Both the position numbers and the translations under genes were made by a program. A DNA stretch of 64,000 nt from Anaeramoeba ignava BMAN (lineage: Eukaryota > Protista > Anaeramoebae), in NCBI GenBank assembly GCA_028826165.1, contig JAPDFW010000116.1:1-64000 (forward strand), in the 5' to 3' direction. Position 1 is the stretch's first letter; every line of letters begins with the position of its first letter. This document shows, piece by piece, positions 1 to 62,593 of the stretch. The notes beneath the pieces are model-generated. The model was given only the letters and a program-made list of their open reading frames with translations, made no database searches and was not told the DNA's origin.

Positions 1-3000
1 TATATTGATTCACTTATCATTTGTTAATTTAGAAGTATCAATTAAAAATTCTTGTTAAATCTTCTACTTGATTATTTAAAAAGAAACAAAATATCCATAA
101 TAATATCCATCTGGATTTAATATCTTATTTTGTTCTTCTTTTCTTGAATATCCATTTTTGAAAAATTTTATCAAATTTCTTTTTAATTTGTTCTTTTCTT
201 GAATATTTTCCAAATGTTTTTATTGTAAAAAATCATATTCTTGAAATATTTGTTCTGAAATATATTTTTGAATTTCTTCATTTTTAATTTTTGAATATTT
301 GTTTGAATCTTGAATAATATAATGAATATTTAAAAATAAAATTTTTGATATTCTTCAAATAAATCATTTATATGTTCAATTTCTGGAAAGAATCTTTTTT
401 CATTGATAATAAATTTGTTTTGTTTTTTTGTTAAATCAAAATCATTTGTGTATTGGAAAAGAGTTAATAAAAATGTGAAACTCATCCATTTTAAATCATT
501 TTCTTTAAATGTAAAATAATCTTTTAAATAATTGAAAATATTTTTCTTAAATTTTCATCTTTTTCTAATAATTTGAAAATATAACTAAATAATATTGAAA
601 ATAAATTTGGAAATTGAAATTCATTTTGATCTATTCCAAAAATTTGATTTTGATTTTGATTTTGATTTTGATTTTGATTTTGATTTTGATTTTGATTTTG
701 ATTTTGATTTTGATTTTGATTTTGATTTTGATTTTGATTTTGATTTTGATTTTGATTTTGATTTTGATTTTGATTTTGATTTTGATTTTGATTTTGATTT
801 TGATTTTGATTTTGATTTTGATTTTGATTTTGATTTTGATTTTGATTTAGATTTATTCCAAAAATTTCATTTTGATTTTGATTTTGATTTTGATTTTGAT
901 TTTGATTTTGATTTTGATTTTGATTTTGATTTTGATTTTGATTAATTAATTTTTTTGTAATAATTTTGAAATTGTTCAAGAATGAATTTATTTTTTCTTT
1001 TTTTTGAATTTGTTTTATAATAATTTGGAAATAATTTTCAAATAAATTAATTTTTTCATTTTGATTTTTACATAATTGAGAAATATCAATAATAGATTCC
1101 GAATGTTTATCATTTTTGGAAAGTTTAAAATTTTGAAATAAATTTTGAAATTCTTGAGTTTGATTAATTTCTTGTAAATTATATTTGTTGAGAAATAATA
1201 TGTAAATTTCCATCCATTTATCAAATAATTTTTTAAAATCTTTTTTAAAATCTTTTTCAAATTCTTTCATTTTTTTCATTTCAATTATAAATTCATAAAT
1301 TTTATCAAGTGGAATTGAAATAATTGTTAAATCATTTGATAAATTGTGATTATTTAAATAATTTTCAATAATTTCAATTTGTTTTTTGATAAATTTTGAA
1401 ATTAGATTTTCTTTTTGAATTTGAATTTGGATTTGAATTTGAATTTCTTTTTCTATTTCTTTTTCTTTTAAATCTCTTTTATCAATATTCAAACAATATT
1501 TATAAATTTCATAAATTTTTTGAAATATATTCCAATTAATTTTTTGTGAAATTTCTTTTAATGATAAATTTGTTAAATCTTCATTTTTTTCAAATTGATA
1601 AATGAAATCAGAAATATTTCCAATATATTCTTCTAAAAACTTTTGTTCTTCTTTTGTAAAAGATATTTTTGTAAAATCACTCATAAATGCTTCTAGAAAT
1701 ATTTGTGAACCTATTTTAGGATTAGTTGAATATCTTTCAGACCATTTAATAATAGGTTTTTCTATAATTTCTTGAATTATTTTGTTTTCTTCTTCTTGTT
1801 GTTTTGTTTCTTCAAATAATTTGAAATAAAAATATTGGAAAAATGGGAAATTTGAATTATTAAATTGATAAGTAAGAATATTTTGGAAATGTGGAATTTT
1901 TAAATTTTTGAATATCTTTTCCCATAATTTTTGAATTTCATTGGTGTTTTTTTGATTAATAGGAAAAAGTTTGAAATTATCATTAATCATAATATTACTG
2001 AATAAAATAGCAAATATAGTTTCTAATTTTTCTTTAAATTTAAATTGAATAAATGAAGTTAATGATTCATTTCTTCTTTTCTTTTCAAATTTTTCATTAA
2101 TATTCCATTCATATAATTTGATATTTCCATTTGTTCCTTTTTGGATCATTTCTCTTATTTTTTTCATTAAAATTTCTTTGTTTTTTGATAATTTCATTTC
2201 TTCAAAAAATGTTTTGGTTTTTTCAATTTTTTTCTTTGAATTTAAAAATTTAAGAATAGAAATTGGAATAATTAATTCAAATATTTTTTCCCAATTTTCT
2301 TCAATAACTTTTTCTAAATAATTTCCAGGGAATGTTGTTTTCAAATCAATATTCATTTCAAAATCATATTGGAAAATATCATCAATATAATAATATTCAA
2401 AATTTTTTTCAAATGAAAAATGGAATGTATTTGTTTCTTCTTGATTTGATGAAATATGAACAATAAACATAAGAAAGCATTTAATTTCTTCTTTTTCTTT
2501 TTCAATTATATTTTCAATTAAATGTTTGAATTGATAAAATATTTTTCTGATAAATTTCTTGTTGGTGTAAAATGAATAATTAAAAATGAAATTTGGATCT
2601 TTTTTCTTTGATTCTTCTTATCCATTTGATGATTTTGATTTGATTTTTGAGGAAATATTCCAAGAATATCTTTAATTTTCTTTTTGAAATCTTTTTCATT
2701 ATCAAATTCAGAAATATTTAATTCTTCAATATTAAATCCTTTAATTTCAATATTTTTTGATTTTGATTTTAATGATGATAATGTTAAAATGATTGATTTT
2801 TGAATTTTCTTTGGTTTTAATTCATTTTGAATTAATTCATTTAAATTATTATGATATAAACTATTATATCTTTCACAAAAATATTTTAAATATAAATATT
2901 CATTTATTCCCATTTCTAATTCAATTTCAATTTCATTTTCATTTTCATTTTCTTTTTGATTTTGATTTTGATTTTTATTTTCTTTTTCATTTTGATTTTC

Positions 3001-6000
3001 CTTTTCAATTTGATTTTCATTTTTCGAATTTTGGATTTAAATTGTTGAATTTTTGTTGTATTAAAAAATATTTTCAAAATTACAAACTCTCATCCACATA
3101 TTAACTCCTTCAAAAATCAAAAATTGTTTTATTTTCTTTCATTCTTATTTTCTTTTTGAAATTATTTCTTGAAGTTTTATTGCAAGTGATGGAAATAATC
3201 CAGAATGATAAGAAACAATTAAATCTTCTTTTTTAATTTTTGAATATTCACAAATTTTTTTGATTATTTCTTTTTGTTGTTCATAAAATTTTCGAATAAT
3301 TCCAAATTCAATAAATTCATCTAATTTCAATAAATATTTTTCAAATCTATTTAAAATAGCTGGTGTTTCATTATGATAAGCATGACTTTTATCACAAATT
3401 GAAATTAATCTGAAATTAGGATCAATTTTAATTAAATTTCCAATATTTCCCATTGAAATTTGTGCATAAAGATTATTTCCTTCTTTGATATAATTTTGAT
3501 TTAATAAATCATATAAAGGTAGAAATAAATCGTTATTATTATATAAAATAATTATTCCTCCTTTTCTTATTGAATTTTCAACTTTATGTAAATCTTTAAT
3601 AATTTTAACTTTTGTTTGATCTTTTGGGAAAGAATTTCCAAAAACAACACTAATTTTTCTTCCTTCTTCTTCAATTAAACTTTCAATAATTTGTAAAAAT
3701 AATTGGTAAATTTAAAGTTTCATCAATTAAAATCATCATATTTCTTGAAAAATCTGAAATTTTATTTGGATTATTTAATCCATAATTTTCAAATATTCTT
3801 TTTTGAATATTTTGAGAAATGAGTTCTTTTGTTGTTATTTTTGTTAATGATATTAAATTTAATGAATTGGATTCATTTTGAAATTGAGAAATATTTTGAA
3901 TAATTTCTGGTTTGGAATTAAAATTTCTTAATAAAGCATTTGAAATTAAATCTGGATTATTATAAGAAATGTTATGAGTTATATAAGAATATCCAATCAT
4001 TTTAACAAAATAATAAAAATCTCTAAGTCCAAAATAAGGTTTCCATTCTGAATCTTTTTCTTTTTCTTTTTGATTTTTGATAATATTTTTGTAAATTCTT
4101 GAAAGACTATCTGCAAATAGTTCTGGGATTTTAGAATTCATTCCTGTATTTTCTGAACATAATATTTGTTGAGCTGTTGTTTCAATTTCTGTTATTGAAT
4201 CTCTATAAATAAGAATTCCTCTATTCATATTACTTGGATCTAAAATCCAATTTGATATTGAAACAACTGAAACTGTTTTCATTTCTTTTAAAATATCTTC
4301 TAATTTTTCATTTTCATTTTTATTTTTATTTTGATTTTGATTTTTATTTTGATTTTGATTTTGATTTTGATTTTGATTTTGATTTTCATTTTCATTTTGA
4401 TTTTCATTTTGATTTTGATTTTGATTTTGATTTTGATTTTGATTTTGATTTTCATTTTGATTTTGATTTTGATTTTGATTTTGATTTTCATTTTGATTAA
4501 ATCTTTTTTGAAGTCTTTTTGATAATTCTTTTTCTGATTCTTCAAGTTTTGAATGAAGTGTTTTAAGTGGAAATTCAGAACTCCATTCTGCAAGTGCAAT
4601 TTCATCAAGAACAACAACTCCTAAATTATTTTCATTTTCTGTATTTTGTTTAGCTAATTTGAAAACTTCTTCAATTTCTTTATTTGTTGTTATTTGTGAA
4701 CATTGAATAAAAGATTGATAAAGAGATCTAAGGTTAAGTTTTCTTAATAATTCATTAATTTCAAATGGTGGTTTAAAAGATTTTAAAATGACTTCAAGAG
4801 AAATTGATTTTGAAGTTCCTATTTATTATTTAATTAATTTAAATTTTTAATTTTAATTTTAAATTATAAATTATAATTTTAAATTATAATTTTTTACCTG
4901 GTTTCCCAATAATAAATAAAGGTATTTGAGTATAAATTGAAATATAAAGCAATAAACAATTTTCTTTTAATGCTGTATTTTTTGCAATCATTTTTTCTTT
5001 AAAATTATAATCTAAATTTTCAATTAAATTTGTTTTAGCATTTTCAATCATTTCTTTATAATCTTTTGATTTTCCATTTCCAAAAATTTTAATCGAATAT
5101 TTTTTTCTTTTTTTTTGATTTTTTTCTCTAACTTCATAACAAACAAAAAGAGATAAATAAATTGCTTTTTGAATTATTATTCCAATTTCTTCTTTTTTTT
5201 CTTTAATCTGTTTTAAATCAATTTGTTTTAAATCAATTTTATCTTTTAATAAAATTATACCAGCTCTTGATCTTGATTCATAAATCCATCTAAATATTCT
5301 AAGAGTTCTTGAAATATCTCTAAGTGAAACTTTTGAAGCTAAATTCTTTTTTTCATTTTGGTTTTGATTTTGATTTTGGTTTTGATTTTGATTTTCTTCT
5401 TCTCTAATATATTGATGAGATTTTTGAATATATTCAATAAAATTTTCCATAAATTCTTTGATTCTTTTAATATCTTCTTCTTTTTTAAAAATAGAATCAA
5501 ATGTATTTTTAACCATTTTTTGAATATAAGGTAATTCTTGTTCTTTTTGAAGTGAATTAAAATTTAATATTTGTTTTTGTAAAGAATCTGGAAGTTTTTG
5601 AACTCTATAAACTGATTTTTGAATTTTCTTATTTTCTTCATTTTCATCATCTTTTTGATAAAATAATCCAAATCTTTCATATTCTTTTCTATCCATTTCA
5701 CTTCTTTTTCTATATGGATTAATTGCTGCTATTAATCTTATATTTGTTGATATCTTTTTCTCATTAAACATTTTATCAATAAATAAATATTTGAAAATTG
5801 GAATAAAAGATTTTGGAGCTGTATTTAATTCATCAAAAAGTATTATAAATGGTTTTGGAAAATATTTTTCTCCTTCTTCAATTAAATTTTGAATATCTTT
5901 TTTCTTTATAGAATTATTAACATTTAATGTTTTGATTTTTTGTTCCAAAATAGTTTCAAATAAATATTCAATTAATGAAGTTTTTCCACATCCAGTTTCT

Positions 6001-9000
6001 CCACTTATAATTGTTGGAAGATTAACAAAATTTCTGAATTGAAGAAATAACATTTTAGAAACATTATCAAAAGTAAGAACATATTTTGATTTTCCTTTTT
6101 TATGTTCTTCAATTAATTCTTTATCAATTTCTTTTGGATTAAGAGTAGAGAAAAATTCGAAAATTCTTTCAATTTCTTCTTTAGAATTGAAAGTATCAGA
6201 AAATTTTGATTCTACTAAACCTAAATTTATTGTTATTTTTTCAGGATTGTATAATAAGGGAGAATTTTTTGAATATTTTTTTATAAATATTCCAAATCCT
6301 GAAAAAAAATGATCTAATTTTTGTTCGTTTGTTGATTTAATTGAAATTGGAATAATATTTTCATTTTCATTTTTAAATTGTAATTTTGGAAGAAAAGTAT
6401 AAAAATTATCAAAAATATTTTTGTTTTCTGATAATAAAGGAAATAAAATAAATCTTGAAATTGAAAGAAACCAACTTTTAAGGATTGATCTTGTTAATTT
6501 TTTCGATTTCTTTTCTTTGACTTTTAGAAAATCCCATTCTAATATTAAATTAATAAATACTTTTAATGAATTCCAAAATTGTGATAATAATCTAAATGTG
6601 TAAATATTTTTCATATTTCCTCTATTAAATTGATTTAAAACAATAGAAATATTTTTTTCAATTAATTCAATAAATCTTTTTGGATTTGGTTTATCATCTT
6701 TTTCTAATATTTCTTTAATATTTTCAATTCTATCTGGTTCATTTAGAATTTGTTTATCTTCTAATTTTATCATTAAATTTGCAACTTTTTTTAATTTTTC
6801 ATCTTCTTTTTCAATTATTTTTTGATTTGAATCAATTTCATAATTTTGGAAAACAAAAGAATCTTTGTTATAATTTAAATAATGTAAATTAAATTGATAA
6901 AGTGGATAAAAAGAATTCCACATTTTTTCATTTCGATTTTCATTTTGATTTTGAATTTGATTTTGATTTTGATTTTGATTTTGATTTTGATTTTGATTTT
7001 GAGTTTGAATTTGATTTTGATTTTGATTTTGATTTTGATTTTGATTTTGATTTTGATTTTGATTTTGATTTTGATTTTGATTTTGATTTTGATTTTGATT
7101 TTGATTTTGATTTTGATTTTGATTTTGATTTTGATTTTGATTTTGATTTTGATTTTGATTTTGATTTTGATTTTGATTTTGATTTTGATTTTGATTTTGA
7201 TACTTTTCTTGTTTATTAGGAATTTCAAATAAAAGAATTATGTTTGATTGAATATTCCAACAAAGAGATTTTGATGATTTTGGATTTGAATTTTCAATAG
7301 ATCCCCACATTGTAAGTTGCCAAATTGCATCTGAAATTTCAATAGAACATTTATTTGGAAATTCAATATGAATGAATATTGTTTCTTTTTCTTTTTCTTT
7401 TTCTTTTAATTGATTTGTAATTTGATTTAATTTAGAAATCATTTCAGAAATTGTTCCTTTATTAAGTTGAATAATTTGATATTTATAATTATTTGTTTTT
7501 CCTTTAAAATCAAAACAAAATTTTCTAATTTGAAAACTTTTTCCTTCACCTGTAAAATTTGAATAAAAAACATAAATATTGCGATAAATTGGTGAACATT
7601 CGATAATTTGTTTCAGATTTTTGTTAATTTCATCTCCAAAATCAATATTTAATTCTCCTTCTTGAAGTAAAGAAGATAAAAATGTTTTTTCTTGTTTTTG
7701 ATAAAATTCAAATATTATCATTGGTATTTTTGTAACGAAATCAATTGAATTTGTTTCAGAAATTAGAATATTTTGACATTTTTGAGATAATCTATCAGCA
7801 TGAATTATTGAAAATAATAATGAAAAAGAACCATTATTTTCTTGTATTTCATTATAATATTTATAAATTGAGAAAAAATTAATTATATCTTCAGGTTTTG
7901 TATTTGAATTACAAATCAAAATTTGTTCTCTTAATGGAAAATATTTTAAATATAAATAATAAATCATTGTAACATAATTCAATATTTTTGAATCTTCTGT
8001 AATTTTTATAATAAATATTTTTGGATTTCGAATTGATCCATCTCTTTTTTCATCGATTTGTTTTTTCAATTTAAATTGGATTTTTTGAAGATTTATGTTT
8101 TTTTCTATAATTGATAAATTTATTTTGGAAATGGAATCTTGAATAAATTTTAAGGAGAAACCTTCTTCAATTTTTTGAAAAAAAGATTTTGAAAAATCAA
8201 TTAAATCAATTTTTTCAAATTCTGGATTTATATATTCCATAAAATTTATTTTGTTAGTTCTTTTTTCTCCATTAATTAATCTGATAATTGATTTAAAAAT
8301 TTCATTTTGATTTTGATTTTGATTTTGATTTTGATTTTGATTTTGATAAATTAAAAGAAGTTGTTGATTGGTTAAAATTCCTTTTAAAGGTATTTCTTTT
8401 AATTTTTCTTCATCTTCTTTCCATTTTTTAAGATTTTCTTCAATTTTGTTATTAAATTGGTTTAATTCTTCGGAATAATCAAGTTTTTTTGATTTTTTTG
8501 AGTTTTGTTTGATTTTAAAAGGTTTATCAATTTCTTGAATTTTTTGATAATATTGAATTGGAATAAATCTTTTCAAATTTTGATAAATTTTATCAATAGT
8601 TTTAAATAATTCTTCATATTGTTGAATTAAAATATATTCTTTTTTTCGATTTTTTGATTGATTTTCTTGATTATCTCCCAATGCAATTTTTGGTTTTTTA
8701 TCTAATGCAACACTTAACATATTGATAAAATCTTCAATATTTCTTTCATTTGATTTTTCTGTTTGAATAATACATTTAAATAATGGTTCTTTCAAATAAA
8801 AAATTAATTTGCATCCTTTTTCAAAAATATTGGAAATATCTTGAAGTAAATTTGTAGATGAATATGTAAATTGTTGAATATCGAGTAATGGGAAATATTT
8901 AATCAATAATTTTACATCAATTTCTTCTTTTGTTTTTTCTTGAAATTTTATTTTCTTGATTTCATTTTGTAAAGAATGAAGATCATTAAATTTGTTTGAT

Positions 9001-12000
9001 AAAAGTATTGGTTTAAAAATATTTTTGAGACTAATTAAAGATTTTTTAAATTCTTTGTATAGAATAAAATCAATTGATTTTAATTTTTTCATTTCATTTT
9101 GAATTTCATTTTCATTTTTTGATTTTAACCAAATTAAGATTTCTTCACTACTTGATATTTGTTGAGAATTATTATTTGATGGAAATAATTCAATGATAAA
9201 TTCAAGAAGTTTATAATCAATATTAATTTTTTGATTCATTTCTTTTTCAAAATCATTTATTTGATTAATTTTCTTTTCTTTCCAAATATTTTGTAATTGT
9301 TCGATTTCTTTGGTTTGATTTGAATTAATTTCATTTCTTTCCAAAAAAATATTAAGGAAATTGGTAATTGAATTTATATTATTAATTATTTTTCTAATTT
9401 GGAAAAATTTTAAGATTTTTTTTTTGATTTTTTGAATTTTGATTTCTTCAATTTTTGGGAAATTGTTTTTTGTTAATAATTCAGAAATGAATTGTTCTTT
9501 GTTTAATGGGAATTTTTCATTTAATTCTTCCAATTTTGTTTCCATATTAATACTATTTTTCCATTTTTGCCAATTTGATTCTACTTTTTTACAAATTTTT
9601 AGAATTGATAATTTTTTGATTTCTTGATTTTGGTTTTGAAGAAATTCTTGAAATTGTTCTCTAAAAAATAAATTTTGATGAAATAAATCAATTGAATTGA
9701 TTTTTCTGTTTTCAATATTTTGGAAAAAATTTGAAAATTCATTTAAGGTTATTTCTCCTGATTTGATTTTTTCCCAATCTTTAAATTCTTTAATTATTTT
9801 TTCATCTTCAAAATTATCAAAAAATTCCTTCATTTTAGAAAGTTTATGATTTAAACTATTCAATTCCTTTTTGTTTTTTTTAATTTCATTTTGATTTTGT
9901 TCTTTTGTTTCTTCAATTTCATTAAATAAATTGAATATTTCATTAAATTTATTTTCATTAATAAGATAAAAATTAAAATCAGATATTGTTGCTTTTTCAG
10001 GTGATTTTAATTTTTGGAAATATTGATATAATTCTTTTTGATAATTTTTCAGTTCTTCATGAAATTTTTGAGTATCTTTTGAAACATTAATTGGTAAATA
10101 TTTGTTTATAGGTTTACTTTTTTGAAAGTTTAAAAACCAAATTATTGATTTTTTCCATAACTCTTGAAGTTTTCCATTTTCTTTAAAAATATCAATCCAA
10201 GTAATTTTTTGATTTTGATTTTGATCTTTCTTTTTCTTTTTTCTTTGATTTTGATTTTGATTTTGATCTTGGGAATTCAATTTTTTTCTCCAAATTTCTA
10301 ATTGAATTGATAAAGGAAGATATTTTATAAAATCAATTCTCATTAAATTTTGGAAATCATTTATTGAATCATTTTCACATAATTCTTGGATTTGATTTTC
10401 AAACTTTTCAATAAATTCTGCTCTTGGTTGATCTTTTTGAATTGCATTATTATTATAATTTTGGAATTCTTCAGATTTGAAAATTGAAATTGAATTTAAA
10501 ATCTTTTGGAGATAATTATTTTTTTTAAAGGAAGGTTGATTTAAAATTGAATCATTGATCACATTTGGAATAATAGTTGCAACTTGAATTATTTCATGTC
10601 TATTCCATTTATATTCATTTTTTTTAAAACTAAGGAAACATTCCATCCAAAATCGAAAACATTCTAATAAATTTGGAAATTTTGTAATTTTTAACTTATT
10701 TTGGAAATCTGGATTTAAAATAAGATAAACCTTTGATTTTTGAAAGAACTTTGAATAAATAAAATCAAACCAAATTTTGTTTTTATAACTGAATTTGTTT
10801 GAGAAAATTAATTCTAAAATTTGATTTGTTAATTTGAATTTTGTTTTTGATTGAAGATAAAATGAAATGATATTTTTAATATGAGAATTTTGGATAATTT
10901 CTTTTGATGGTGTAAATTCTTGGTTAAAATGGATGTAAAGAGGAAGAAATTCAAGATTTGAATTATCAATACATTTTGAATTATAATTATAAAGGAATTG
11001 ATTTAAGAATGAAAAAAGATTTTGATTTTGAGTATTTTGATGAGAAGAAATAATAATTTCATTTGCTTTTTGAAAATCTTGTTGTGTGCATTCATTAAAA
11101 ATTTTGGAAACAGAAGATTCACTATATTTTAATCCAATAACAAATAACATTCTTGCAAGAATTTCAGGATTTGATTTGAAAATAAGTTGAGTTTTCTCTT
11201 TAATTTCAAGTTTTTGTTTTTGGAATTGATCAAGAAGTTGCAGAAAATATTCAAAATCTGAAATGTATTCTTTTTGAATTGTATAATTAATAATAGCATC
11301 AATTATTCTTGCTCCTTTTTTTTTCTCTTTTTCACTTAAATCATAAATAATTGTTTTTGGATTTTGATTTTGATTTTGATTTTGAATTTGAATTTGAATT
11401 TGAATTTTTTTGGATTCTTGATTATTGATTGAATAAGAAATATTTTTTGAAGAAGAAATAAAATTGAAAAAATAAACATTTTTATAAGTAAAAACATTTT
11501 CAGCTTCTTTTTTTTCAGGTTCTAAAATATAAAGTTTTGGTTTTTTTTCTTTTTGAGCAAATAAAATGAACAAAATTTCTTTTTCTTTTTCTTTTTCTTT
11601 TTCATTTTCTTTTTGTAATTTGAATCTGAATTTTGGAATCTGAATTTTTAGAATTTGATTTTGATTTTGATTCTTTTTGATTTTCGGTTTGATTTTGATT
11701 TATATTTTTGATTTTGGTTTTGATTTTGATTTTTTTTTTTTTTTTCTTTTTTTTGATTTTCATTTTGGTTTTGATTTTTGGTTTTGGTTTTAATTTTGAT
11801 TTTGATTTTGAATTTGGTTTTGATTTTGGTTTGTGTTTGTGTTTGATTTGTGTTTGTGTTTTTGTTTGTGTTTTGTTTTTTTGTGTTTGTGTTTTGATTT
11901 TGTTTTTGTGTTTGTTTGTTTGTATTTGTGTTTGTGTTTATGTTTGTGTTTGTGTTTGTGTTTGTGTTTGTGTTTGTGTTTGTGTTTGTGTTTGTGTTTG

Positions 12001-42581: not shown

Positions 42582-44863
42582 TTAAATGAAATAAGTTTCA
42601 AGTTCATCAACAATCCATTTATTAAAAGAACCAGCTAAATAACTTTCAGCTTCATTTGTTTCATATTTAATTCCATTAGGTAGATTGTAACTTTCACCGA
42701 AATTTGAACAAACAGGTTGTAAATTAGAATTTAACCGAATATCAGCTATAAATATTTTAATAAATATAAATAATTAATTTTAATAATAATTAATAATAAT
42801 TTAATTTAAAATTTATTTTATTTTAATTTAAAATAATAATATTATTTATTATATTAATATTTTTGGATTATTTATTAATTTAATTTTAATTATAATAATA
42901 ATTATTTATTAAATATAAATTATTTACCAACTATTTTAATAAAGATAAATAATTAATTTGAATAATAATTAATAATTTAATTTAAAATTAATTTTATTTT
43001 AAATTGAAATAATAATATTATTTATTATATTAATATTTTGGATTATTTATTAATTTAATTTTAATTATAATAATAAATATTTATTAAATAATAAAATTAT
43101 TTATATTTACATCCAAAAACTGGACCATAACTTAAATGATAACCAATTGCATATTTTTCCATTTCTTGTTTAATTGTAAACTTCTCTGGTTTTCTATCTC
43201 CTTTATTATTTCTTAATGAAAAAATAAATGCATTTGAATCTTTAATAAATCCATCATCATCATTTCTATCTTCTTCTCTCCATTTTGATTTATCATTTGT
43301 CCATCCAACTTGAGTAAAACCTCCAAAAATAAAATTATCTTTTGTTTTGATAATAACTAATGTTTTTCCTTTATTATCAACTGCTTTATGCCAATTTTGA
43401 CAATCAAATCCATCTCTTTTTGCTGAAAATCCTTTTTTCATTTTAGAAAAAAAATCATTATCATTTATCCATTCTTGTAATTTCTTAACATATTCTTCTT
43501 CTGTAATAATTTCTGAATTTGAAAATTGAGGAAAAATCTTCAATAATTTATTTTGATTTTGATTTTGATTTTGAATTTGATTTTGATTTGATTCTTTTTG
43601 AATTTTTTTGATTTTTTGTTTCTCTTTTTCAATTTCTTTTTCAAATGATAATTTAAGATTTTGAATTTCTTCATCTTTTTGTTTGAGAATTTTATCTTTC
43701 TTTTCAATTTCTTTTTTGAGTTTCTCTTGAATCTCTTTTTTTTCTTTTTCTTTATTTTCGTTTTCTTTTTCTTTCTTTTCAATTTCTTTTTCAAATTCCG
43801 ATTTCAGATTTTGATTTTCTTTTTCTTTCTTCTTATTTTCAGATTCAAATGATTTGATTTTTTTATCTTTTTCTTTAATTCTTTTATCTCTTCTTTGAAT
43901 TTTCTTTTCATTTTCTTTAATTTGTTTATCATTTTCTTGAATTTTCTTTTCATTTTCTTGAATTTTCTTTTCTTTTTCTTTGATTTTTGTTTGATTTTCT
44001 TGATCTTGAATTTCAAAAATAGTTCTTTCAAAATGAATTAAAAAAGAATTTGGAAGAAAAATATCAAATTGTTTTAATTTATCAAAATCTTGTTTTGAAA
44101 TTGAATCTTTATCAAATAATGAAAAAAAAGAATGAAATAATCTTTTCTTTGCATTCATTTTGTGTTCATATTTCTTTAAATTTAATCTTTGATTTCTTTT
44201 TTTAATCCAATTATCCAAAAATTGAAAAAAATCAAATTGAAAAATTTCTTTTTTTTCTTGTTTAAATTGAATAAATTTGATAATTTCTTCTTTAGTTAAA
44301 TTGAATAAATTTTCATTATTTTGAATTTGGGAAAAATTTTGATTTATTAATTCAAAACATTTTATTTCAATTTCATTTGAATTTAAATTTCGATTTTGGA
44401 ATAAAAATTGGAAAAAATTTGAATAATTAATTGAATTTAAAATTTTTTTTTGAATAATTTCTTTCAATAAATTTAATTTAAAATAAATTGAAATTTCCAT
44501 TAATTGGATAAGATTTTCTTGATTCTCAAAAGAAATATTTCCATAATAAATATAACTCAAAATTGATTCCATTTCTTTTTTATTGAATTGATTTAAAGAA
44601 ATAGAAAGAGATTCTTGCCTTAATGACTCATTAAAAAAAGGAGATCTTGAAGATAAAATTGATTTATGAACTTTAATTTCAAAAGGATTTGATTTATTCT
44701 CAACAAAAATTGAAAAATCTTTAAATGAATTTCCATTTAAAAGGTTTGAATAATCTTTAATTAAATTTTTTGTTACTTTTTTTTCTAAATTTTTCATTTC
44801 ATTTTCATTTTCATTTTGATTTGCATTTTCAATTTGGTTATTATCATTATTATTATTATCCAT
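42582..44863 (-). CDS. BTB/POZ-coiled coil-TLDc protein, copy 1
   Basis: BTB (KDFSIFVE..IKVHKSILSSRSPFF..ILSYIYYG), an EK-rich coiled coil, and TLDc (GFSAKRDGF..WHKAVDNKGKTLVIIKT..IFGGFT..AFIFSL..GPVFG). Exon 1 is 44863-43111, a putative 3-nt exon TTG is 42930-42928, and the last exon is 42745-42582 (DIRLNSNLQPVCSNFG..YLAGSFNKWIVDELETYFI*). Confidence 0.9.
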
Positions 44864-45234
44864 TTTGTTTTTTGTTTTTTGTTGTGTTTTTTGTTTTAAA
44901 AAGGAAAAATGAAAAAAAATTTAAATAAAAAAAAATGAATAAAAAAAGTGGATTTTGAAAATAAATAAAAATATAAAAAATGAGAATAAATTTAAATTAA
45001 TAATTAATTTAATTTTCTTTTTAATTTATTATTTTAAATAAATTTATTAATAAATTATTATTTTTATTAATTTTTATTATTAAAAAGAAAATTATTTTAA
45101 TTTAATTTTTAATTTAATTTTTTTTTGGAATTTAAAAATTATTAATAAATTTAATTTTAAAAACAAATTTCAAATTAATATTAATTCAATTTAATTCAAA
45201 AAGATAAAATTTTAATTTCAAAAATCAATTTTCA

Positions 45235-46210
45235 AAATATTTTTAAATAATAAAATATTTAAATCTAAAACATTAAATTATTATTTTAAACATGGAATTA
45301 AATATTAAATTATATTTTTAAATTAATTTATAAATTGGAATATTAAATTAAATCTATTTTCATTTTTATATTTTTATGCTAAATATTTAAATAATAAAAT
45401 ATTTTAAATCTAAAACATTAAATTAATATTTTAATAATAAAATTAAATATTAAATTATATTTTTAAATTAATTTATAAATTAAATATTAAATTAAATCTA
45501 TTTTCATTTTTATATTTATATGTTAAATATTTAAATAATAAAATATTTAAATCTAAAACAATAAATTATTGTTTTAATAATAAAATTAAATATTAAATTA
45601 TATTTTTAAATTAATTTATTAATTAAATATTAAATTAAACCTATTCTTATTTTTATATTTTTATGTTAAATATTTAAATAATAAAAATATTTAAATCTAA
45701 AACATTAAATTATTATTTTAATAATAAAATTAAATATTAAATTATATTTTTAAATTAATTTATTAATTAAATATTAAATTAAATCTATTCTTATTTTTAT
45801 ATTTATATGTTAAATATTTTTAAATAATAAAATATTTAAATCTAAAACAATAAATTATTATTTTAATAATAAAACTAAATATTAAATTATATTTTTAAAT
45901 TAATTTATAAATTAAATATTAAATTAAATCTATTTTCATTTTTATATTTATATGTTAAATAATTAAATAATAAAATATTTAAATCTAAAACATTAAATTA
46001 TTATTTTAATAATAAAATTAAATATTAAATTATATTTATAAATTAATTTATAAATTAAATATTAAATTAAATCTATTCTTATTTTTATATTTATATGTTA
46101 AATATTTAAATAATAAAATATTTAAATCTAAAACATTAAATTATTATTTTAATAATAAAATTAAATATTAAATTATATTTTTAAATTAAATATTAAATTA
46201 AATCAATTCC
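45235..46210. repeat. ~143-145-bp AT-rich tandem repeat, about 7 copies, upstream of BTB-TLDc copy 1
   Basis: TCTAAAAC anchors at about 45264, 45409, 45552, 45696, 45841, 45984 and 46127. Confidence 0.9.
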
Positions 46211-46546: not shown

Positions 46547-49500
46547 TTAAATGAAATAAGTTTCAACTTCATCAACAATCCATTTATCATAAGAACCAGC
46601 TAAATAACTTTTAGCTTCATTTGAATTCCATTTAATTTCATTAGGTAGATTATAACAATTACCAAAATTTGAACAAACAGGTTGTAATTTAGAATTTAAC
46701 CAAATATCAGCTATAAATATTTTAATAAATATAAATAATTAATTTTAATAATAATTAATAATAATTTAATTTAAAATTTATTTTATTTTAATTTAAAATA
46801 ATAATATTATTTATTATATTAATATTTTGGATTATTTATTAATTTAATTTTAATTATAATAATAAATATTTATTAAATATAAATTATTTACCAGCTATTT
46901 TAATAAAGATAAATAATTAATTTTAATAATAATTAATAATAATTTATTTTAAAATTAATTTTATTTTAAATTTAAATAATAATATTATTTATTATATTAA
47001 TATTTTGGATTATTTATTAATTTAATTTTAATTTTAATAATAAATATTTATTAAATATAAATTATTTACAATCTATTTTAATAAAGATAAATAATTAATT
47101 TTAATAATAATTAATAATAATTTAATTTAAAATTAATTTTATTTTTAAATTGAAATAATAATATTATTTATTATATTAATATTTTGAATTATTTATTAAT
47201 TTAATTATAATTATAATAATAAATATTTATTAAATATAAATTATTTACCAACTATTTTAATAAAGATAAATAATTAATTTTAATAATAATTAATAATAAT
47301 TTAATTTAAAATTAATTTTATTTTAAATTTAAATAATAATATTATTTATTATATTAATATTTTGTATTATTTATTAATTTAATTTTAATTATAATAATAA
47401 ATATTTATTAAATATAAATTATTTACCAACTATTTTAATAAAGATAAATAATTAATTTTAATAATAATTAATAATAATTTAATTTAATATTAATTTTATT
47501 TTAAATTAAAATAATGATATTATTTATTATATTAATATTTTTGGATTATTTATTAATTTAATTTTAATTATAATAATAAATATTTATTAAATATAAATTA
47601 TTTACAATCTATTTTAATAAAGATAAATAATTAATTTTAATAATAATTAATAATAATTTAATTTAAAATTGATTTTATTTTAAATTTAAATAATGATATT
47701 ATTTATTATATTAATATTTTGGATTATTTATTAATTTAATTTTAATTTTAATAATAAATATTTATTAAATATAAATTATTTACAATCTATTTTAATAAAA
47801 ATAAATAATTAATTTTAATAATAATTAATAATAATTTATTTTAAAATTAATTTTATTTTAAATTTAAATAATAATATTATTTATTATATTAATATTTTGG
47901 ATTATTTATTAATTTAATTTTAATTATAATAATAAATATTTATTAAATATAAATTATTTACAATCTATTTTAATAAAGATAAATAATTAATTTTAATAAT
48001 AATTAATAATAATTTAATTTAAAATTGATTTTATTTTTAAATTTAAATAATGATATTATTTATTATATTAATATTTTGGATTATTTATTAATTTAATTTT
48101 AATTTTAATAATAAATATTTATTAAATATAAATTATTTACAATCTATTTTAATAAAAATAAATGAATTAATTTTAATAATAATTAATAATAATTTAATTT
48201 AAAATTAATTTTATTTTAAATTGAAATAATAATATTATTTATTATATTAATATTTTTGGATTATTTATTAATTTAATTTTAATTATAAATAATAAATATT
48301 TATTAAATATAATTTATTTACGAACTATTTTAATAAAAATAAATAATTAATTTTAATAATAATTAATAATAATTTAATTTAAAATTAATTTTATTTTAAA
48401 TTTAAATAATAATATTATTTATTATATTAATATTTTGAATTATTTATTAATTTAATTTTAATTATAAATAATAAATATTTATTAAATATAAATTATTTAC
48501 AATCTATTTTAATAAAGATAAATAATTAATTTTAATAATAATTAATAATAATTTAATTTAAAATTAATTTTATTTTAAATTGAAATAATAATATTATTTA
48601 TTATATTAATATTTTAGAGTATTTATTAATTTAATTTTAATTATAATAATAAATATTTATTAAATATAAATTATTTACCATCTATTTTAATAAAGATAAA
48701 TAATTAATTTTAATAATAATTAATAATAATTTAATTTAAAATTAATTTTATTTTAAATTTAAATAATAATATTATTTATTATATTAATATTTTGATTATT
48801 TATTAATTTAATTTTAATTATAATAATAATTATTTATTAAATATAAATTATTTACCAGCTATTTTAATAAAGATAAATAATTTAATTTTAATAATAATTA
48901 ATAATAATTTAATTTAAAATTAATTTTATTTTAAATTGAAATAATAATATTATTTATTATATTAATATTTTGGATTATTTATTAATTTAATTTTAATTAT
49001 AATAATAAATATTTATTAAATATAAATTATTTACCAACTATTTTTAATAAAGATAAATAATTAATTTTAATAATAATTAATAATAATTTAATTTAAAATT
49101 AATTTTATTTTAAATTTAAATAATAATATTATTTATTATATTAATATTTTGGATTATTTATTAATTTAATTTTAATTATAATAATAAATATTTATTAAAT
49201 ATAAATTATTTACAATCTATTTTAATAAAGATAAATAATTAATTTTAATAATAATTAATAATAATTTAATTTAAAATTAATTTTATTTTTAAATTGAAAT
49301 AATAATATTATTTATTATATTAATATTTTAGAGTATTTATTAATTTAATTTTAATTATAATAATAAATATTTATTAAATATAAATTATTTACCATCTATT
49401 TTAATAAAAATAAATAATTAATTTTAATAATAATTAATAATAATTTAATTTAAAATTAATTTTATTTTTAAATTGAAATAATAATATTATTTATTATATT

Positions 49501-51716
49501 AATATTTTGGATTATTTATTAATTTAATTTTAATTATAATAATAAATATTTATTAAATATAAATTATTTACCATCTATTTTAATAAAGATAAATAATTAA
49601 TTTTAATAATAATTAATAATAATTTAATTTAAAATTAATTTTATTTTAAATTAAAATAATAATATTATTTATTATATTAATATTTTGAGTATTTATTAAT
49701 TTAATTTTAATTATAATAATAAATATTTATTAAATATAAATTATTTACAATCTATTTTAATAAAGATAAATAATTAATTTTAATAATAATTAATAATAAT
49801 TTAATTTAAAATTAATTTTATTTTAAATTGAAATAATAATATTATTTATTATATTAATATTTTGGATTATTTATTAATTTAATTTTAATTATAATAATAA
49901 ATATTTATTAAATATAAATTATTTACTCCTATTTTAATAAAAATAAATAATTAATTTTAATAATAATTAATAATAATTTAATTTAAAATTAATTTTATTT
50001 TAAATTGAAATAATAATATTATTTATTATATTAATATTTTGGATTATTTATTAATTTAATTTTAATTATAATAATAAATATTTATTAAATAATAAAATTA
50101 TTTATATTTACCTCCTCCAAAACTTGGACCATAATCTAAATGATATTTAATTGCATATTTTTCCATTCCTTTTTTAATTGTAAACTTTTCAGGTTTTCTA
50201 TCCCCTTTATCATTTCTTAATGAAAAAATAAATGCATTTTCATCTTGAATATATCCCTCACCATCATTTCTATCTTCTTCTATCCATTTTGATTTATCAT
50301 TTGTCCATCCAACTTGAGTAAAACCTCCAAAAATAAAATTATCTTTTGTTTTGATAATAACTAATGTTTTTCCTTTCCTATCAACTTTTTTATGCCATTT
50401 TTTAGCTTTAAATCCATCTTTTTTTGCTGAAAATCCTTTTTTCATTTTAGAAAAAAAATCATTATCATTTATCCATTCTTGTAATTTCTTAACATATTCT
50501 TCTTCTGTAATAATTTCTGAATTTGAAAAAATCTTCAACAATTTATTTTCATTTTGGTTTTGATTTTGATTTTGATTTTGATTATGAATTTCTTTTATTT
50601 TTTCTTTCTCAAATGATAATTTAAGATTTTGAATTTCTTCATCTTTTTGTTTGAGAATTTTATCTTTCTTTTCATTTTCTGATTTGAGATTTTGATTTTC
50701 TTGTTTTAAATTTTGAGTTTCAGATTCAAATGATTTGATTTTTTTATCTTTTTCTTTAATTCTTTTATCTCTTCTTTTAATTTTCTTTTCATTTTCTTTA
50801 ATTTGTTTATCATTTTCTTGAATTTTCTTTTCTTTTCTTTGATTTTTGTTTGATTTTCTTGATCTTGAATTTGAAAAATAGTTCTTTCAAAATGAATTAA
50901 AAAAGAATTTGGAAGAAAAATATCAAATTGTTTTAATTTATCAAAATCTTGTTTTGAAATTGAATCTTTATCAAATAATGAAAAAAAAGAATGAAATAAT
51001 CTTTTCTTTGCATTCATTTTGTGTTTATATTTCCTTAATTTTAATGAATTAACTCTTTTTTTAATCCAATTATTTAAAAATTGAAAAAAATCAAATTGAA
51101 AAATTTCTTTTTTTTCTTGTTTAAATTGAATAAATTTGATAATTTCTTCTTTAGTTAAATTGAATAAATTCTCATTATTTTGAATTTGGGAAAAATTTTG
51201 ATTTATTAATTCAAAACATTTTATTTCAATTTCATTTGAATTTAAATTTCGATTTTGGAATAAAAATTGGAAAAAATTTGAATAATTAATTGAATTTAAA
51301 ATTTTTTTTTGAATAATTTCTTTCAATAAATTTAATTTAAAATAAATTGAAATTTCCAATAATTGAATAAGATTTTCTTGATTCTCAAAAGAAATATTTC
51401 CATAATAAATATAACTCAAAATTGATTCCATTTCTTTTTTATTAAATTGATTTAAAGAAATAGAAAGAGATTCTTGCCTTAAAAACTCATTAAAAAAAGG
51501 AGATCTTGAAGATAAAATTGATTTATGAACTTTAATTTCAAAAGGATTTGATTTATTCTCAACAAAAATTGAAAAATCTTTAAATGAATTTCCATTTAAA
51601 AGGTTTGAATAATCTTTAATTAAATTTTTTGTTACTTTTTTTTCTAAATTTTTCTTTTCATTTTCATTTTCATTTTGATTTGCATTTTCAATTTGGTTAT
51701 TATTATCATTATCCAT
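46547..51716 (-). CDS. BTB/POZ-coiled coil-TLDc protein, copy 2 (carries the micro-exon array; one-base deletion near 50833)
   Basis: Paralogue of copy 1. Exon 1 is 51716-50112, ending GPSFGG-G|. The last exon is 46710-46547 (|CT-DIWLNSKLQPVCSNFG..WIVDEVETYFI*). One A missing in an A-run relative to copy 1 explains the split ORFs. Confidence 0.88.
46711..50111 (-). repeat. Tandem array of 19 ~178-bp GT-AG intron units separated by 18 putative micro-exons
   Basis: Each junction reads ...TTAAAATAG-NNN-GTAAATAA... on the minus strand. In transcript order NNN is GA, ATT, ATG, ATG, ATT, TTG, CTG, ATG, ATT, TTC, ATT, ATT, ATT, ATT, TTG, TTG, ATT, CTG. Confidence 0.9.
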
Positions 51717-52119
51717 TTTGTTTTTGTGTTTTGTTTTTGTGTTTTTGTTTTTGTTTTGTTTTAAAAAAAAAGGAAAAAAATGAAAAAAAAAATTTAAAAA
51801 AAAATGAATAAAAAAAGTGGATTTTGAAAATAAATAAAAATATAAAAAATAAGAATAAATTTAAATTAATAATTAATTTAATTTTCTTTTTAATTTATTA
51901 TTTTAAATTAATTTATTAATAAATTATTATTATTTTTTATTAATTTTCTTTATTAAAAAAAAAGGAAAATTATTTTAATTTAATTTTTAATTTAATTTTT
52001 TTTTTGGAATTTAAAAATTATTAATAAATTTAAATTTTAAAAACAAATTTCCAAATTAATATTAATTCAATTTAATTCAAAAAAAAGATAAAATTTTAAT
52101 TTCAAAAATCAATTTTCAA

Positions 52120-52820
52120 AATATTTTTAAATAATAAAATATTTAAATTTAAAACAATAAATTATTATTTTAAACACAAAATTAAATATTAAATTATATT
52201 TCTAAATTAATTTATAAATTGAATATTAAATTAAATCTATTCTCATTTTTATATTTTTATGTTAAATATTTAAATAATAAAATATTTAAATCTAAAACAA
52301 TAAATTATTATTTTAATAATAAAATTAAATATTAAATTATATTTTTAAATTAATTTATAAATTAAATATTAAATTAAATCTATTCCCATTTTTATATTTA
52401 TATGTTAAATATTTAAATAATAAAATATTTAAATCTAAAACATTAAATTATTATTTTAATAATAAAATTAAACATTAAATTATATTTTTAAATTAATTTA
52501 TAAATTAAATATTAAATTAAATCTATTCTTATTTTTTATATTTATATGTTAAATATTTAAATAATAAAATATTTAAATCTAAAACATTAAATTATTATTT
52601 TAATAATAGAATTAAATATTAAATTATATTTTTAAATTAATTTATAAATTAAATATTAAATTAAATCTATTTTCATTTTTTATATTTATATGTTAAATAT
52701 TTAAATAATAAAATATTTAAATCTAAAACAATAAATTATTATTTTAATAATAAAATTAAATATTAAATTATATTTTTAAATTAATTTTTAAATTAAATAT
52801 TAAATTAAATCTATTCTTCT
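52120..52820. repeat. ~143-145-bp tandem repeat, about 5 copies, upstream of BTB-TLDc copy 2 (same family as 45235-46210)
   Basis: Same unit sequence, with anchors at about 52147, 52292, 52434, 52578 and 52722. Confidence 0.88.

Positions 52821-58813: not shown

Positions 58814-62593
<3,780 letters not shown>

Follow-up and report, generated by a model that had tools for sequence, protein, structure and literature searches.

A chain of candidate one-codon exons between near-identical introns appears to spell a variable TLDc loop in Anaeramoeba ignava

A tandem array of intron-like units interrupts a BTB-TLDc gene

The window analyzed here is a 64,000-nucleotide (nt) stretch of contig JAPDFW010000116.1 (positions 1 to 64,000; assembly GCA_028826165.1) from the protist Anaeramoeba ignava BMAN, in which a gene encoding a BTB-TLDc protein is interrupted by a tandem array of near-identical GT..AG units separated by variable triplets. 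Judged from sequence, about 40 related A. ignava genes appear to spell a single variable loop of the TLDc domain codon by codon in this manner. The array gene and its tandem paralog are organized as follows:

50112..51716, minus strand: exon 1 of the array gene, encoding the BTB domain, a coiled coil and the first ~140 TLDc residues and ending in phase 1 (Pfam; paralog alignment)
46711..50111, minus strand: array of 19 near-identical GT..AG introns with G-free bodies (unit parse)
49927..49928, minus strand: first spacer, which reads GA in the assembly (2 nt); one base was probably lost here from a 3-nt exon, either GGA or AGA
46892..49751, minus strand: 17 candidate 3-nt exons, free of stops when read in order (unit parse), with lowest coordinates 49749, 49572, 49393, 49214, 49035, 48856, 48679, 48501, 48322, 48141, 47962, 47784, 47606, 47427, 47249, 47070 and 46892
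46547..46710, minus strand: last coding exon of the array gene, with the ~53 remaining TLDc residues and the stop codon (77% match to the paralog's last exon)
43111..44863, minus strand: exon 1 of the tandem paralog, BTB-TLDc frame intact (Pfam, alignment)
42746..43110, minus strand: two-unit array of the tandem paralog (intron 42931-43110, TTG 42928-42930, intron 42746-42927)
42582..42745, minus strand: last coding exon of the tandem paralog (alignment)

Parsing the 3,401 bases of the array yields 19 units of 174-183 nt, every one of which begins with GTAAATA and ends with ATAG; in the first and last units, the outer end is slightly extended. Seventeen of the 18 spacers between them contain three bases and one contains two (ATT x8, ATG x3, TTG x3, CTG x2, TTC x1, GA x1). 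All 47 G's of the array lie at junctions and none inside the intron bodies. The array splits the gene in phase 1, downstream of a GPxFG motif. An earlier note, made from the letters of this DNA, had described the repeat as a string of complete introns, and our parse reproduces its unit number, unit ends, spacer places and spacer letters, along with the phase-1 placement and the translations obtained when all or none of the triplets are included.

Profile matches place the BTB domain (PF00651, E 1e-13) N-terminal to the TLDc domain (PF07534, TLD, E 6e-18) in exon 1, which is 95.6% identical to that of a tandem paralog 7 kb away. This paralog carries two units flanking one TTG at the homologous site. 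Because it does so, and because the unit sequence has at least 827 matches across the genome, the array cannot be attributed to chance. The two BTB-TLDc genes belong to a block duplication (42750-45500 and 49750-52380, 89% identical over 2.8 kb). A 143-bp satellite upstream of each gene is part of the block, and the copies now hold 2 and 19 units. No Rfam family was found in the region of the tandem paralog.

The array site lies in a length-variable loop of the TLDc domain

As modeled by AlphaFold (predicted local distance difference test score, pLDDT, of 95), the tandem paralog has a TLDc fold and matches 4ACJ in Foldseek (E 3e-8). The array site falls in a coil ahead of a strand, between strands, and profile alignment equates it with the Gly loop of Skywalker/TBC1D24. 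The corresponding loop in human NCOA7 joins strands 7 and 8 (PMC8329711), and mutations around the Gly-rich TLDc loop affect both folding and partner binding (PMC8608904, PMC11465063). The earlier note's placement of the array in a TLDc loop that could vary in length is indirectly supported by the annotated family members, in which 1-12 residues of very varied sequence separate GPxFG from the next Asp within a mostly conserved TLDc domain. In one intronless member the loop has 9 residues, and the sequence of this member is identical to that of a transcript-derived protein in EukProt. In the predicted model of a member with a 12-residue loop, the core is retained and the loop has a pLDDT of ~61. 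Residues 533-541, 567-590 and 597-613 of the protein P0001 are also highly variable in the TLDc family (entropy ~3 bits); the location of these positions beside the array loop suggests that together they form one variable face of the domain.

Arrays occur in many paralogs at one homologous site

All named homologs among the best matches are A. ignava proteins. For the TLDc exon, the genome yields 596 candidate paralogs, at least 150 of them scored. Among the best 150 last-exon matches, ~37 are preceded by an array-type intron end, and most of the others lie in long open frames that are intronless at the array site. The DNA of 60 loci contains arrays in 33 genes, several of them parsed in part only, plus a single intron in one gene; six further arrays are known from coordinates only. 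A scan of other TLDc paralogues, as the earlier note had suggested, thus finds an array of 2 to ~25 units at the homologous site in at least 39 of them. Exon-to-exon distances give a range of 1 to ~25 units, the wide difference in copy number between paralogs that the note's appeal to unequal recombination predicts. The TLDc tree is too poorly resolved for intron origins to be counted.

Among the best 150 of the 827 unit matches, all parsed spliceable copies sit at one homologous TLDc site. Spread of the unit as an Introner was rejected, as no copies occur at unrelated coding sites within those same 150 matches. An inverted-repeat check returned a 21-nt, 86% subterminal match, one of many in this near-pure A/T sequence.

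Two further observations concern the distribution of the unit. The same unit, ~177 nt long but joined at a different, non-splice junction, makes up a satellite that lies downstream of some paralogs and also breaks into one array (C137 ~137691, C137 ~167353, C93 ~411344, C114 9600-10800); it may be either a source or a derivative of the intron. In four tandem TLDc genes (C1:1057691-1073646), the gaps at the array site measure 7-18 unit lengths. These genes are absent among the unit DNA matches listed, and their gaps are possibly a diverged unit family.

Splice sites are retained while intron bodies and triplets vary

When junctions are anchored on intron-body motifs, both AG and GT are present at 222 of 235. 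Nine of the remaining 13 lack both sites (deletions, some false anchors) and four lack one. Within the intron bodies, four C columns are replaced in 17-48% of units (diversity 0.30-0.60), and even the best-kept of these is intact in only 152 of 183 copies (Fisher P 5e-5 against the splice sites, a value that overstates independence as the unit copies are related). The sense strand of the bodies contains 20 G vs 692 C in 38.7 kb. The units therefore behave as the spliced introns that the earlier note took them to be, with the spliceosomal (U2-type) hallmarks of conserved GT..AG ends and an AT-rich, G-poor body, as far as sequence can tell.

Diversity at the three triplet positions is 0.65/0.26/0.70, vs 0.03 on average in the intron body, and the triplets are 25% G+C, vs <2% in the bodies. 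The triplet is thus highly variable as previously noted, but it is not the only such place, given the four C columns. Introns are 98% identical between arrays, whereas their flanking exons are 87-89% identical, a gap that points to conversion among paralogs. Homogenization alone should nevertheless not suffice, since the G's of the splice sites are kept while C columns and triplets vary. RNA folding is no better than for shuffles (z 0.5), so no structure that might guide splicing was detected by this measure.

Triplets read in order avoid stop codons

Spacers are 3 nt long in 217 of 230 cases, all at the one phase-1 site. Read in order in phase 1, they give no stops in 203 codons, compared with 3.5 expected from within-array shuffles (P 0.0097). 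The depletion holds for unique pair types (Fisher P 0.016) and with any single array left out (P <= 0.05). It is specific to this frame: phase 2 contains 52 stops in 174 codons and no depletion, and phase 0 contains 5 stops. These values fit the earlier note's view of the triplets as coding exons, and neighboring triplets seem to have been selected as codons. With every triplet included, the loops would be rich in Asp, Tyr, Asn and Phe.

Stop-prone triplets start with AG or AA, and a stop arises if the preceding piece ends in T. A skipped subset would consequently create a stop in six of the eight arrays that have AG- or AA-starting triplets, although such joins make up just 14 of 836 possible skips (1.7%). 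The earlier claim that any subset of triplets keeps the frame and never produces a stop is correct for the 17 triplets of this gene, but fails in the family at these six informative arrays. Stop-free in-order joins, set against skip joins with stops, point to ordered inclusion as at least a major product.

The last exon starts with GTG, CTG or ATG, and NTG accounts for 36% of triplets. The first triplet probably arose, on this evidence, by duplication of the intron together with the first three bases of the last exon. Decay of G/C toward A/T would then leave the middle T in place while positions 1 and 3 vary. Positive selection was rejected as a conclusion from triplet diversity alone, as A/T-biased decay accounts for much of it. 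Beyond what decay explains, the triplets retain 25% G+C, 16 array pieces have G in the middle and 10 have C at the third position. Diversifying selection on the triplets is plausible.

A model for codon-by-codon evolution of the loop

We favor, with modest confidence, a reading in which the triplets are real one-codon exons that are spliced sequentially and mostly in order, and in which unequal crossing-over and unit conversion re-spell the loop. Array anatomy, family spread, splice-site retention, stop avoidance and loop variability are the observations on which it builds. In this model, some members of a large BTB-TLDc family acquired a phase-1 intron of ~180 nt in the glycine loop of TLDc. 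Duplication of this intron along with the three bases that open the following exon would have created the first 3-nt exon, after which unequal crossing-over would add or remove units, each worth one loop residue. Gene conversion would maintain the similarity of the introns, leaving the triplets to drift or to come under selection. The introns would probably be excised one after another, leaving the triplets in genomic order in the main mRNA, and the locus described here would encode a ~19-residue loop rich in Asp, Tyr and Phe. Most of the diversity would then separate paralogs and alleles, and skipping might add to it.

BTB proteins commonly serve as Cullin-3 substrate adaptors. Given this role, and since the variable positions cluster in the family alignment, the array-gene proteins are by analogy most likely such adaptors too, with the TLDc surface binding a variety of targets.

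Several points weigh against ordered one-codon splicing. For the spliceosome, chains of so many 3-nt exons are sterically problematic. About 10 independent pair types underlie the stop test, and one join in an array on C56 (CTT + AATC) is a stop if its 4-nt spacer is real, though an extra base is probable there. An ancestral GTG or CTG decaying toward A/T accounts for a large part of the triplet pattern with no need for positive selection. Spacers of 2 or 4 nt make up 13 of the 230, and many array genes have upstream frame breaks as assembled. Finally, EukProt transcript-derived proteins match no array gene in homolog searches over 53-1029 aa and cluster look-ups; entries were found for distant family members only (P0150, P0181, P0209).

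The most durable alternative is that splicing is chiefly combinatorial, each 5′ site being free to join any later 3′ site so that one gene gives many loop isoforms. The near identity of the introns would make their sites hard to distinguish, all triplets are symmetric in phase 1, stops are rare among skip joins, and the short symmetric exons of schistosome micro-exon genes (MEGs) are used in this way (PMC4350168). The contrast between stop-depleted in-order joins and the skip-join stops of the informative arrays argues otherwise, and neighboring triplets are often identical, so that many subsets would be redundant. We regard this as unlikely to be the principal mode, while noting that it can coexist with ordered inclusion. 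Its strongest extension, that subset splicing in ~40 genes generates pools of isoforms and thereby a very large loop repertoire on the ubiquitin-ligase adaptors of a unicellular eukaryote, akin to complementarity-determining region 3 (CDR3) of antibodies and directed against symbiont, viral or foreign proteins, is a shade more doubtful still.

We consider it improbable that the arrays are satellites inside one long intron, with only the outer GT and AG used, the loop unchanged and the copies young and homogenized. The unit with a non-splice junction does form plain satellites near some paralogs, A. ignava introns are often repeat-filled, and NCBI gene models of array genes skip the arrays; gene finders, however, are blind to 3-nt exons. 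Homogenization would not spare AG and GT while adjacent bases and C columns vary, and a satellite leaves unexplained both the avoidance of stops in one frame and the placement in the family's length-variable loop. Introns of the published genome have a mode of 76 nt in length and an A+T content of 92%, and the assembly is nanopore-based with Illumina polishing (PMC11550330).

The properties of that assembly bear on the breaks in the array gene. In an A run near 50832, the frame of exon 1 is broken by 1 nt; the NCBI model P0004 bridges this break while omitting the whole array. The first spacer has 2 nt. Most non-3-nt spacers in the family are one base off a common triplet and lie at a homopolymer. 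Selection on spacer length was rejected, as the 5.7% of non-3 spacers equals background run-length noise (~5% in intron bodies). At C60:1355383-1356253 the assembly shifts frame by one base, and P0181, a TLDc protein derived from transcripts, reads across this shift, showing that residual indel errors remain in the assembly of this family. Since the spacer-error rate matches run-length noise and P0181 crosses a similar switch, both single-base breaks of the array gene probably reflect errors of assembly. For the GA spacer, the best reading is a GGA or AGA that lost one base; both triplets are common in paralogs (GGA x11, AGA x9).

The array gene copy could be a pseudogene, but the broader proposal that the system is real and its copies dead or non-productive (pseudogenes, nonsense-mediated decay), or that array lengths are artefactual, is the least probable of all: it draws on the two breaks, the decayed junctions of some arrays and the lack of EukProt matches to the close family, against which stand the single-base, homopolymer nature of both breaks in a nanopore assembly (PMC11550330), the passage of P0181 through its frame switch, and the differences in triplet order between arrays, unlike collapsed or invented repeats.

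Relation to known systems

The arrays resemble the MEGs of Schistosoma mansoni in their runs of very short symmetric exons, their expanded, fast-evolving families and their omission from annotation. MEG exons, however, are mostly ~15 nt, make up most of a secreted protein, lie between long introns and have documented alternative splicing (PMC10526429, PMC4350168). The A. ignava exons are one codon each between near-identical introns and affect one loop of a folded domain. The genes thus share the many consecutive short symmetric exons, but not the mostly micro-exon secreted protein: the products are BTB-TLDc proteins of 500-640 aa, with no evident signal peptide (no dedicated prediction was run), in which the triplets spell only the one loop.

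Tetrahymena leucine-rich repeat (LRR) genes with 90-bp exons consist of tandem one-phase intron-exon units that are clonally expanded, and unequal crossing-over has been proposed to alter the number of units both within a gene and from gene to gene (PMC6564038). Near-identical tandem intron-exon units, a single phase, variable copy number and membership in a large protist family are common to both systems. The Tetrahymena unit, however, is a 30-residue structural repeat rather than one loop residue, and no retrotransposon link was seen for the A. ignava arrays. Lacking a defining feature of each type, the array genes are assigned to neither.

Isolated micro-exons of 1-3 nt are spliced in plant APC11 and VPS55 (PMC8831610), and a 3-nt exon of cytohesin indicates that one added loop residue can alter binding (PMC6314551). 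Such exons are single and flanked by unrelated introns, in contrast to the A. ignava chains of up to ~24. Compared with the TLDc proteins OXR1, NCOA7, TBC1D24 and mEAK7, the A. ignava domain has a common fold at ~15% identity, but it is fused to BTB, exists in hundreds of copies and has a hypervariable rather than conserved loop.

Dscam and antibody CDR3 focus variation on a presumed binding loop, and variation in the A. ignava genes is likewise concentrated in one. Unlike those systems, the arrays have no mutually exclusive cassettes, no docking structure was detected by folding, and there is no sign of somatic rearrangement.

A literature search whose coverage excludes most subscription journals found no paper on Anaeramoeba micro-exons or tandem identical introns, and no description of chains of one-codon exons between cloned introns. 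The intron note in the A. ignava genome paper does not mention the arrays (PMC11550330). If the triplets do reach mRNA, up to ~24 consecutive 3-nt exons would be spliced, beyond any description we found, with a bearing on how the spliceosome handles exons too short for both sites to be engaged at once. The arrays would then offer a route for evolving a binding loop residue by residue, and these genes would be misannotated in public databases exactly where they vary most. Long identical introns provide a recombination handle that a three-base repeat lacks.

Neighboring genes in the window

A proteasome ATPase (RPT3-like) gene at 58928-62592 has introns of up to 1 kb composed of simple hexamer repeats, in which C is present and G is almost missing from the sense strand. 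At 524-11573 lies a very large AAA+ ATPase-like gene, spread over several frames and containing long Gln-Asn runs, which we take to resemble RNF213-type proteins.

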